A DNA stretch of 62,872 nucleotides, filler included, from Octopus bimaculoides (lineage: Eukaryota), in NCBI RefSeq assembly GCF_001194135.2. It is 4 parts of 3 records of this genome, joined end to end, with 100 filler letters (N's around TTAATTAATTAA, not from the genome) between each part and the next. Parts side by side here need not be neighbours in the genome. Positions count along the whole stretch, not along the records: positions 1 to 15,700 come from NC_068983.1; 3 more parts are not named here. One strand, 5' to 3'. How positions within the stretch are numbered: position 1 is the first letter of the stretch; each line of letters begins with the position of its first letter. A model generated the notes under the pieces. It did not search any database. It was not told where the DNA came from and worked only from the letters and a program-made list of their open reading frames with translations. The position numbers and the translations under genes were made by a program. This document shows, one piece after another, positions 1,086-15,220 of the stretch.

Positions 1086-1198
1086 TCACTCACAAACTTG
1101 ACAGGACTTCTTGCAGTAGAAAAGCATATAATCTGGGTTTGATTTACATTCACCCATCTCAGCCCAAGCTCCACATTTGCCATTCTCATCTGTACAGG
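1086..1198 (-). CDS. Terminal coding exon: ShKT domain 6 and stop
   Basis: tttcgttctag|CC...TGT GAG TGA. Encodes CTDENGKCGAWAEMGECKSNPDYMLFYCKKSCQVCE*. Confidence 0.92.
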
Positions 1199-1798
1199 CT
1201 AGAACGAAAGAAGTAAATATTAATATAAGACATGAAGCAAAACCAATAATGAAGTTAATTGTTAGTCTCTTTCAATAAACAGGATATTGAATGCTATACC
1301 AGCTTAGACAGTACTGAATCTAACATATAAAATGCTACATGATCTTATTGTCCTTGTTCAAACAAAGATGTGTCATTAGAAACTCTTTCTATAGTGCATA
1401 TGTCACTGATGGTACCACACTAATTTCTTCATACAAGCTGGTTGGAAACGAGGCTTGGATGAAAAAGATCTACCTTATTTCTTCAGTAATTTTAATGGGA
1501 TGCAGCAATAAAGATATCCAGAATGGTAGTAGAACCAAATCTAGATTAATAGTATTCTTAGATATTTAAATAACAATTTTTTCAGACATTTCTCACTGAT
1601 AAACTGTACTACTGCAAAAGGAAAAAAAATACAGGCATGGCTGTGTGGTAAGCAGCTTGCTTCCCAACCACATGGTGCCAGTTTCAGTCCCACTGCATGG
1701 CACCTTGGGCAAGTGTCTTTCTTCTACTATAGCCTTGGGCTGATCAAAGCCTTGTGAGTGGATTTGGAAGACGGAAACTGAAAGAAGCTAGTCATATA

Positions 1799-1876
<78 letters not shown>

Positions 1877-12621: not shown

Positions 12622-12669
<48 letters not shown>

Positions 12670-15220
12670 ACATGACAGCAGTGACATTGCTGTCAGGGGT
12701 TGGATATGAACTGGAATTGAAACAATTTAAAATCAACATAAATTTGTTTCTCATAGACAATATTAAACTGTTTGGTTAGAGTGAAAAAACTAGGTAATTT
12801 AATTAAAACTGTCCATTTATTTAGCAAAGACATAGGAATGGAATTTGGGATAAAGTGTAGTATAACTTAAGAGAAAAAAAGGTGTCAGTATATATGATAG
12901 TGTAATTTGATAGTGAAGTAATGATGGATATTGGGAAGGACAGATATAAGCACTAAGGATTACGAGTCAGCAACATCAAAAAATTTGATTGAATGAACTC
13001 TGTGGAAAAGAATACCAGATATGATTAAAATTGGTGCCTCAGCCAAAATTAACTGGAAGAAACATGATATTAACAAATATATGGAATGAGATATGAAGCA
13101 GGTATATTCAAATGGAATAGAGAAGAATTCCTGAAGTTTGACAGGTGTAGAAACTCATGACAATGGAGCATTCCACCTTAAAATTTCGTTAATAGGCTTT
13201 ATGTATTCAGGGAAAACAGAGGAAAGGATGTGATTAGTTACTGGAAACGTAGAGGTAAGAAAATAATCTACAATGATATGTAATTAATCTGCATTGAAGA
13301 ATCACAGCTCCAGTACGAAAACGGAATTAGAGTGATACAGAAAAAGAATCGCAACACAGACTCTTCAAGCCAAGTTAAGCAATAGAAGACCACCGGGTAG
13401 ACCAAGAATGAGATAATTGGAGAATATCCATAGTCTCAGTCGAACATGTTTGGGAATCCATCCACAAAGTCTAATAACTATTGCTTTTGATAGGATCCTA
13501 TTGAGATGTATGAGGGCTCTACTCACACAACCTTTCAGGATTAGTGGACAGGGAAGCTGGGTGAGTTATTTGGGTGGTGTAAAAGTCTCTGATTTGATAA
13601 AACTACACTGATAAGGCTGAATATAAGAGCATTAGAAGACAGGAAAAGCAGACATATCACAATGGAAGCGTAGTATGCAGACAGTTAATGAGAGATGTGG
13701 GTAATAGTGTGACTAGACAAGGGACATGAGACTGGTTGTAAAAATCAGGTCTAAAAGTTGAAACTGAAGGGTTAATCTTGCAGTACAAGAAGAGATACAA
13801 GAAGGGATAATCTTGTAGTACAAGAGACAAATTTTGTCATTAACATTGAATTGCTCTTATGTAGACTTTGTGATCAAAAAGGTGAAAGTATTAATCATGT
13901 AATGAGTGGACGTAGTAAACATGTACGAAGAGAATACAAAAGGTTGCACAATAATATATTGTACATATCGTTCATTTGAAAGTATATAAAAATATAATAC
14001 TAATATTAACGACGGAAGCAGTATTAATACCGAATGGCAACCCTTATATCCTACTTAACATGGTTGTATTATTAGAAGGTCGTATACTGTGGTATTCGCC
14101 TTGAGAGATTCTCTCAAATAGACGTATGGTGCTGAAAGCACAGATATATATCGTTACCAAAAGAATCGTTTGATATAGGCACTGAAACTGCTGGATCACA
14201 TTTCTGCGTACATTTCACCGTATGCAAGCCAAATATCACTGCCAGATGATTCCAGTCTGCTAACGATATATATCTCTGATCTTAGCACCACACATTTATA
14301 TGAGAGGCTCTTTCAAGGCCAAATCCGTAGTATATGACATTCTAAAAATACACCTACGTTATGTAAAAATATAATTTAGACAAGGCTAATAAGTAGCACG
14401 ATTATCAGCATAATGCAATGGAAGAAAATAAGAATTTAAAATACTGTGGGATCTCAGCATTCTACGTAAATGATTAAGAAAATACCAGATATTGTTATCA
14501 TCAACAAAGCAGTAAAACGCTGCACAATAATGTATTCAGCGTCTCCGATGAGAACAGAATGTAGATGAAAGAATAAGAAATATTAAGATATACCAAGATG
14601 TGGAAAGACAAGTCACAAGAGTGTAATATGACAAAAGTTAAAACTGCACTATTGAGAGCAGACACATATGATACAGTCATAAAGAAAATCAAATTATATT
14701 TGAAGATTAGAACTGAAATTTTAACAGAACTGTCAAAGGAAACTACATTATTAGGAACTGCAAAGAACCTAAAGGATAAAAACAAAATTAATTTCGGTAG
14801 GATGTGAAACCAGAACGTAAAAAGTCAGAAAAAAATAACACATAGTATTTTGTTTAATGTTCTAATGATTCTACTAATTCACCACTCAATAGTTTCTCAT
14901 TTAGATACAAGACCAGCAATTTTTGTGAAGAGGGATTTAATCGATACAAATAATCCCAGTACTTCACTGGTACTTTACCCATCTAAGAGAAGTGAAAGGC
15001 AGAGTTGACTTCAGTTAGGTTTGAACTTAAACAGTAAAGAGCCATATGAAATATGGCAAGGCATTGTTCCTAACACAAGCGATTCTCCCAAATGATAACT
15101 CATTACTTGTAAAATACATACCTGAACATTTTCTTACAGACTTCTTTAAGTCTGGGCAGTAACATTCACAGTCCTCCGCCACAAAACCATTTCTGGGACA
15201 AGACTTTTTCGGACAATTTC
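1086..15220 (-). CDS. Spliced 3' part of a gene: EGF-like Cys module plus six tandem ShKT domains (probably an astacin-type metalloprotease-ShKT protein; 5' exons not found)
   Basis: Exons 15122-15220, 11183-11227, 10706-10840, 9228-9347, 4968-5120, 2937-3089, 2338-2475, 1597-1611 and 1086-1198 all have AG/GT boundaries and phase-1 junctions. They join into one open frame of about 322 aa ending CKKSCQVCE-stop. Confidence 0.9.
1597..1611 (-). CDS. 15-nt microexon (linker LVQFIT)
   Basis: ttttttccttttgcag|TAGTACAGTTTATCA|gtgaga. Strong acceptor and donor, symmetric phase 1, and frame-neutral. Confidence 0.6.
1632..2043 (+). mobile_element. SINE family B (CORE-like CCTTGGGCAAGTGTCTT, internal TA/TG microsatellite)
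   Basis: Matches copies at 35122-35528, 44489-44698, 42861-43146, 51054-51288, 53757-53913 and minus-strand copies near 18800-18965, 25505-25870 and 41655-41810. Confidence 0.85.
2338..2475 (-). CDS. Exon: ShKT domain 5
   Basis: tttttccag|AT...GAAC|gtaagc, 138 nt. Encodes CLDGNKHCKDWAETGECHRNPSYMLNNCKKSCNTCGHNTEAYGAE. Confidence 0.93.
2937..3089 (-). CDS. Exon: ShKT domain 4 (duplicate copy B)
   Basis: ttatttacag|TT...ATAG|gtgagt, 153 nt. Encodes EEKCDDSNAVCPVWAKAGHCTINTAYMLKNCKKSCSQCTGGGKDEETVYI. This exon partly shows in track ORF 2803..3060. Confidence 0.92.
4968..5120 (-). CDS. Exon: ShKT domain 3 (duplicate copy A)
   Basis: ttatttacag|TT...GAAG|gtgagt, 153 nt. Encodes EEKCDDSNAVCPVWAKAGHCTINAAYMLKNCKKSCSQCTSGGKEEEKVDE. 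Confidence 0.92.
7830..8217 (+). mobile_element. tRNA-derived SINE family A, full length
   Basis: tRNA-like head TGGCCCAGTGGTTAG...GGTTTCGATTTCC and an (AAC)n tail. Near-identical to the copies at 36170, 42007 and 49004. Confidence 0.9.
9228..9347 (-). CDS. Exon: ShKT domain 2
   Basis: tatttcag|AT...GAAG|gtaata, 120 nt. Encodes CKDDNTDCKHWEGLGECSKNPVYMLVHCKLSCKQCNGTE. Confidence 0.92.
10706..10840 (-). CDS. Exon: ShKT domain 1
   Basis: ttttgattacag|TT...GAAG|gtaaag, 135 nt. Encodes CRDYHRSCAVWAQMNECKLNPLYMLENCEKSCGKCKGGKDEKVE. Confidence 0.93.
11183..11227 (-). CDS. Exon: acidic/Gly linker
   Basis: ttattacag|AT...GAGA|gtaagt, 45 nt. Encodes DTSGNGGVTEPKEEE. Confidence 0.8.
11613..12280. 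mobile_element. Non-autonomous Tigger/pogo-like (Tc1/mariner superfamily) MITE
   Basis: 23-bp TIRs CA(G/A)ACTGTCCTCATTTAACGACC, flanked by a TA target duplication on both sides. Confidence 0.8.
12480..14800 (+). mobile_element. Decayed R4/Dong-like non-LTR retrotransposon (RT, zinc knuckle and REL endonuclease remnants)
   Basis: Broken frames resemble the RT region (KDIGMEFG), LKVETEGLI, CRLCDQKGESINHVMSG..REYKRLHN and LSKETTLLGTAK. Confidence 0.75.
14072..14345. mobile_element. Foldback MITE inserted in the LINE fossil
   Basis: About 85-bp imperfect terminal inverted repeats (ttagaaggtcgtatact... / ...agtatatgacattctaa). Confidence 0.7.
15122..15220 (-). CDS. Exon: EGF-like Cys-rich module
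   Basis: tttctag|GA...TCAG|gtatgt, 99 nt. Encodes NCPKKSCPRNGFVAEDCECYCPDLKKSVRKCS. The C-x-C-x-CP pattern resembles the module after the astacin domain in molluscan and nematode astacins (family recall). Confidence 0.85.

Follow-up and report, generated by a model that had tools for sequence, protein, structure and literature searches.

An astacin-type metalloprotease gene of Octopus bimaculoides with a tail of six ShKT domains

The window analysed here, a 62,872-nucleotide stretch of Octopus bimaculoides DNA (filler included), very probably contains the 3′ two-thirds of an ordinary, single-copy, multi-exon gene on the minus strand that is predicted to encode a secreted astacin-type zinc protease with a tail of ShKT domains. 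Eight exons are joined in frame between positions 15220 and 1086, and their translation corresponds to residues 164-480 of the 480-amino acid (aa) protein XP_014788395.1 / A0A0L8FN26 with zero mismatches; these are the C-terminal 317 residues of that protein. Its name in the databases is "zinc metalloproteinase nas-15(-like)". The DNA at the ShKT locus is 100% identical to O. bimaculoides chromosome CM046603.1 (GCA_001194135.2). The protein search also matched an O. bimaculoides "Metalloendopeptidase" (A0A0L8FN55, 429 aa, with Astacin and ShK domains) and an O. sinensis "zinc metalloproteinase nas-13 isoform X2". Orthologues with six ShKT domains, each 597 aa long, are present in O. sinensis (nas-13 isoform X1, XP_029633955.1) and O. 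vulgaris (CAI9719678.1).

A first-pass annotation made from the sequence alone had described this locus as a hidden gene of nine exons. It is not hidden, as a gene with a six-ShKT product is already in public databases for O. bimaculoides, O. sinensis and O. vulgaris, and the exons number eight, since their translation fills residues 164-480 and leaves no residue for a ninth. The six ShKT domains that were reported are real: the Pfam ShK profile matches six stretches, the splice sites are canonical and all introns are in phase 1. The ends assigned to the gene were exact, 15220 being the first base of the exon for a Cys-rich module and 1086 the last base of the TGA stop. The suggestion of an astacin-like protease with an expanded ShKT tail was also correct, given that the window exons form the C-terminus of an annotated protein with an Astacin domain. 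Both Pfam profiles proposed as a check are found, ShK in the window product and Astacin in XP_014788395.1. The gene had been called almost invisible to the open reading frame (ORF) track; only one exon indeed lies in an ORF of at least 60 aa, which merely reflects the shortness of the exons.

A six-frame scan with the pattern C..[SKT]C..C gave six ShKT matches, all of them on the minus strand, which follow one another along the gene at about positions 10757, 9264, 5028, 2997, 2392 and 1115. Each ShKT exon is free of stops, has a polypyrimidine-AG acceptor and a GT donor, and is flanked by phase 1 introns. Following the direction of transcription on the minus strand, the Cys-rich module of 32 residues, NCPKKSCPRNGFVAEDCECYCPDLKKSVRKCS, is encoded at 15122-15220 (phase 1/1; acceptor tttctag/GA, donor CAG/gtatgt) and is identical in XP_014788395.1 and A0A0L8FN55. 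A linker exon at 11183-11227, encoding DTSGNGGVTEPKEEE, is also in phase 1/1 (acceptor attacag/AT, donor AGA/gtaagt) and matches XP_014788395.1; its length and splice sites are the same in O. sinensis. The exons for ShKT domains 1 and 2 (D1, 10706-10840; D2, 9228-9347) are each identified by pattern, splice sites, Pfam, protein match and conservation in O. sinensis. Domains 3 and 4 (D3, 4968-5120; D4, 2937-3089) are encoded by the upstream and downstream copies of a tandem pair, and the D3 exon is included in the 480-aa isoform and skipped in the 429-aa A0A0L8FN55. The exon for domain 5 (2338-2475) is identified by pattern, splice sites, protein match and conservation in O. sinensis, and that for domain 6 (1086-1198) ends in the TGA stop at 1088-1086. 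All eight exons are symmetric phase 1 modules with canonical splice sites. Such modules let a domain be gained or skipped with the frame intact, as has happened in this gene with domains 3 and 4.

The splice junctions gain independent support from the corresponding O. sinensis locus (L001), where all eight exons agree in length and phase, have canonical splice sites and translate into the C-terminus of XP_029633955.1. The introns of the two species are 88-94% identical. Over 317 codons, synonymous divergence (dS) is 0.125 and non-synonymous divergence (dN) is 0.067. For the same species pair, the ShKT cores give a dN/dS ratio of 0.35; the short linkers give about 2, from small counts. All of the ShKT cysteines (36/36) are conserved between the two species.

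The spliced window product matches Pfam ShK (PF01549) with E=2.9e-40 and 136.9 bits, against a cut-off of 20.9, in six separate stretches. A score so far above the cut-off places the ShKT observation far beyond chance. Six stretches are also found in each of XP_014788395.1 and XP_029633955.1. The cysteine spacing is C-x6-C-x8-C-x10-C-x3-C-x2-C in six of six domains, and the cysteines align with those of ShK, the sea-anemone type 1 K+ channel toxin of Stichodactyla helianthus. In this alignment, ShK and each of the six octopus domains share the six cysteines, Asp5, Tyr23 and Leu25. Domain 6 has its best solved-structure match in PDB entry 2mcr (E=3e-6), which has identical cysteine spacing. Given their sequence resemblance to the solved ShKT domains 2mcr and 2k72, the six domains may adopt the helical ShK fold with disulfides C1-C6, C2-C4 and C3-C5.

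The catalytic part of the protein is encoded outside the window. Using the O. bimaculoides CM046603.1 locus (L002, on which a position equals 41537 minus the window position), we mapped the astacin exons to 9968-21312, upstream of the window. A run of Ns at L002 24733-25836 lies between these exons and the window, and abuts the window edge. The exons for the zinc-binding HExxHxxGxxH motif escaped the first-pass annotation because they are upstream, beyond this gap. The motif, HExxHxxGxxH(E), is HELGHAIGLFHE in both XP_014788395.1 and A0A0L8FN55; it is encoded at L002 18175-18378, and the same exon encodes the Met-turn SxMHY in the form RSIMHYGSY. Pfam Astacin (PF01400) matches XP_014788395.1 with E=1.6e-54 over profile positions 27-189, the protein being N-truncated, and O. 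sinensis XP_029633955.1 with E=2.8e-61 over positions 1-189 of 189. PDB sequence matches include tolloid-like 1, BMP1, meprins, fish hatching enzymes and crayfish astacin, with E down to 2e-30. The zinc motif, Met-turn and profile place the protein in the astacin family (MEROPS M12A), and zinc endopeptidase activity is predicted.

Both O. bimaculoides isoform models start at an internal Met and are without 5′ exons, unlike the O. sinensis and O. vulgaris models, which are complete at this end. Two upstream exons are detectable in the O. bimaculoides DNA, one matching orthologue residues 18-44 at L002 2780-2860 and one matching residues 44-76 at L002 6922-7020. The spacing predicts that a further exon, for residues 76-105, falls near L002 9050, within a run of Ns at 8789-9266. 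We attribute the 5′-truncated O. bimaculoides model to this assembly gap. By analogy with O. sinensis (L001 5001-5081 versus 27906), the exon for the signal peptide probably lies over 20 kb farther upstream. The O. sinensis and O. vulgaris orthologues have, as read by eye, a hydrophobic N-terminus resembling a signal peptide and then a likely propeptide that ends in RGKRK/AIRP. This is consistent with furin-type activation that exposes an N-terminal Ala, as in astacins generally. The proposed architecture would be a signal peptide, propeptide, astacin catalytic domain, 32-residue Cys-rich module, acidic linker and five or six ShKT domains. The protein would be secreted as a zymogen and then cleaved at the basic RGKRK/AIRP site seen in the orthologues to give an extracellular protease.

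The D3 and D4 exons are part of a larger duplication on the minus strand. One block (4683-5586) comprises the D3 exon with intron flanks of about 465 bp upstream and 285 bp downstream, and the other (2653-3558) the D4 exon with flanking intron. They are 93.8% identical over 909 bp at an offset of 2030 bp, and the acceptor and donor sequences do not differ between the two exons. In O. sinensis the layout is the same, with two copies and a shared spacer; its copies (L001 53586-54877 and 55586-56906) are 90.2% identical. One collinear alignment between the species covers both copies and the spacer that separates them. Because the two-copy layout and spacer are collinear between both genomes, the tandem duplication of about 2 kb is, judged from this alignment, no artefact of assembly and predates the split between O. 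bimaculoides and O. sinensis. The same collinearity led us to reject independent duplication in each species. In a four-way alignment of the copies, 30 informative sites group them by species, two group orthologues and two group them crosswise; both orthologue-grouping sites fall in the 3′ linker part of the exon. The simplest reading is that gene conversion has homogenised D3 and D4 within each species, so that they evolve in concert. Relative to the D3 copy, the flank upstream of D4 is broken by a 625-bp G/A-skewed segment with a (CA)n run (window 3559-4183). As O. sinensis has this segment too, the insertion predates the separation of the species.

The high similarity of the copies and the many N gaps near the locus in the assembly could suggest that the pair represents two haplotypes of one exon placed in tandem. 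We consider this extremely improbable, since the independently assembled O. sinensis genome has two copies with the same spacer and a period of about 2.0 kb, both copies are reflected in the 597-aa O. vulgaris protein, and there is no gap between the D3 and D4 copies. The divergence of about 6% also far exceeds reported heterozygosity. A different question is whether six domains overstate the main product, with D3 a minor or decaying duplicate exon. Six-ShKT models exist for O. bimaculoides, O. sinensis and O. vulgaris, and five-ShKT models for O. bimaculoides and O. sinensis. The O. bimaculoides five-domain isoform A0A0L8FN55 is an exact match to the window exons with a clean skip of D3. In O. 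sinensis isoform X2, the D3 core is joined to the D4 tail via internal GGAG/GTA sites that are exactly one repeat unit apart (the O. sinensis D3 and D4 exons are at L001 53998-54150 and 56026-56178). Real internal splicing or a haplotype with one copy might account for this model, as might an artefact of alignment or template switching across the repeat. The two annotated five-domain isoforms favour a five-ShKT main product. Against it, the reading frame and all six cysteines of D3 are intact, its acceptor and donor match those of D4, the exon and its splice sites are conserved in O. sinensis, six-domain models are annotated in three species, and the X2 chimera is possibly an artefact. We therefore regard a main product with five domains as rather unlikely, though it deserves some weight. 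It is more speculative, and quite unlikely in our estimation, that D3 and D4 form a regulated cassette in which ongoing gene conversion keeps the exons near-identical and tissue-specific skipping sets the array at five or six.

The ShKT array would form a tail, stabilised by disulfides, that binds substrate, matrix or mucus or directs the protease to them, and would not be a source of free K+ channel toxin. The first-pass annotation had put forward salivary, venom, mucus or hatching roles as candidates. On the venom reading, single ShKT peptides would be cleaved off to block K+ channels of prey or predators. ShKT is the fold of sea-anemone voltage-gated K+ (Kv) channel blockers, and 2mcr, the closest solved structure, is a C-terminal ShK domain from the chain of a zinc metalloproteinase. 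We take 2mcr to be BmK1 of a Brugia malayi astacin-like protease, presumably a Kv1.3 blocker. Lys22 of ShK is essential for pore block. At this position domains 1-6 have L, V, A, A, S and D, so that the Lys of the Lys-Tyr dyad is missing in all six and the Tyr is kept, whereas 2mcr has Lys-Tyr (PKYM). The five inter-domain linkers contain no dibasic processing sites (KR, RR or KK). ShK itself is a free 35-residue peptide with Lys22, whereas the octopus domains form an array attached to a protease and are without this Lys. In favour of the venom idea, a predatory snail has ShKT proteins among its salivary products (PMC6409789); fusion to a complete protease, on the other hand, is shared with hundreds of non-venom M12-ShKT proteins (PMC6409789). 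Thus a released-toxin role is unlikely, because no domain has the dyad Lys and no linker a dibasic site, and we give a toxin precursor very little credence. The missing Lys, the PKYM of 2mcr and the linkers without dibasic sites point instead to a binding tail. More remotely, some of the dyad-less ShKT domains may modulate ion channels without pore occlusion. An O. vulgaris skin-mucus proteome lists paralogous ShKT-bearing metalloendopeptidases but none of the accessions searched for, which covered this gene and its counterpart in O. sinensis and O. vulgaris.

Several considerations weigh against parts of this interpretation. The splice junctions are drawn from automated gene models and cross-species conservation. 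The signal peptide and propeptide are visible only in the orthologues, the O. bimaculoides model being without its 5′ end. The proposal of gene conversion is based on a single pair of species and roughly 1 kb of DNA. In addition, absence of the dyad Lys does not exclude channel activity: the toxin domain of MMP23 is also without it, yet modulates Kv channels.

Proteins of the M12-ShKT type have been described across molluscs, cnidarians, nematodes and flatworms, few of them characterised, and the number of ShKT domains varies through internal domain duplication (PMC6409789). The CreM12-ShK proteins of the snail Cumia reticulata have a signal peptide, pro-region, astacin M12 domain and a variable number of ShKT repeats, the architecture proposed for the protein encoded here; the Cumia members are salivary-gland enriched (PMC6409789). 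The 2019 survey credits O. bimaculoides with up to four ShKT repeats, whereas this gene has six; given that some gastropods have eight or nine (PMC6409789), six repeats are not exceptional. The closest relatives are XP_014788395.1, which is the same gene in its six-ShKT isoform and shows no difference (A0A0L8FN55 omits the D3 exon), and XP_029633955.1 and CAI9719678.1, which share six ShKT domains and an astacin domain with it. A literature search by accession, and for octopus with nas-13 or astacin, found no functional study of the gene.

The Cys-rich module between the catalytic domain and the ShKT tail had been labelled EGF-like, an assignment that we did not retain. Its cysteine spacing, C-x4-C-x9-C-x-C-x-C-x9-C, is not the canonical EGF pattern, and no Pfam family, EGF included, matched the module at E<=10 in this gene or in two Argonauta homologues.

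Read-through of the D1 donor (window 10706-10692) would give the ending ...EGKVK and then a stop. An O. sinensis paralogue model, "nas-4-like" (392 aa, same chromosome), also ends in ...EGKVK, after a single ShKT domain. The shared ending hints at a neighbouring paralogue or a read-through isoform. At the other end of the locus, a 100-base run of Ns (an assembly gap) occupies window 684-783, presumed to be 3′ untranslated region or a region downstream of the gene.

The introns contain repeats and insertions. At window 1630-1970 an interspersed repeat adjoins a (TA)n/(CA)n microsatellite at about 1790-1850; it has six dispersed copies (79-85% identity) in L001 and two in L002 outside the window. 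It looks like an unclassified element of the short interspersed nuclear element (SINE) type. ARAGORN (tRNA) and Rfam scans of the window found nothing, including at this repeat. Three segments (window 5650-7634, 7830-8217 and 11243-12472) are missing from the O. sinensis introns, which are collinear elsewhere. They are lineage-specific insertions or deletions, probably transposable elements. On the plus strand, window 13390-13520 and 13851-13979 have heavily stop-interrupted translations, RPPGRPRMRxLENI...AFDRILLR and CRLCDQKGESINHVMSG. These bear a tentative likeness to C-terminal motifs of ORF2 proteins of non-long-terminal-repeat retrotransposons. The insertion is old, because the region is common to O. 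sinensis at about 90% identity.

In summary, a reader with the sequence alone was able to assemble a short-exon eukaryotic gene correctly and to guess its absent catalytic domain. The finding matters little beyond annotation, as the gene and its family are already in databases and multi-ShKT astacins have already been described for molluscs. Modest additions are the count of six repeats, the signal of concerted evolution in D3 and D4, and the gap-based explanation of the 5′-truncated O. bimaculoides model. If D3 and D4 are in fact a regulated cassette, it would tune what the protease binds.

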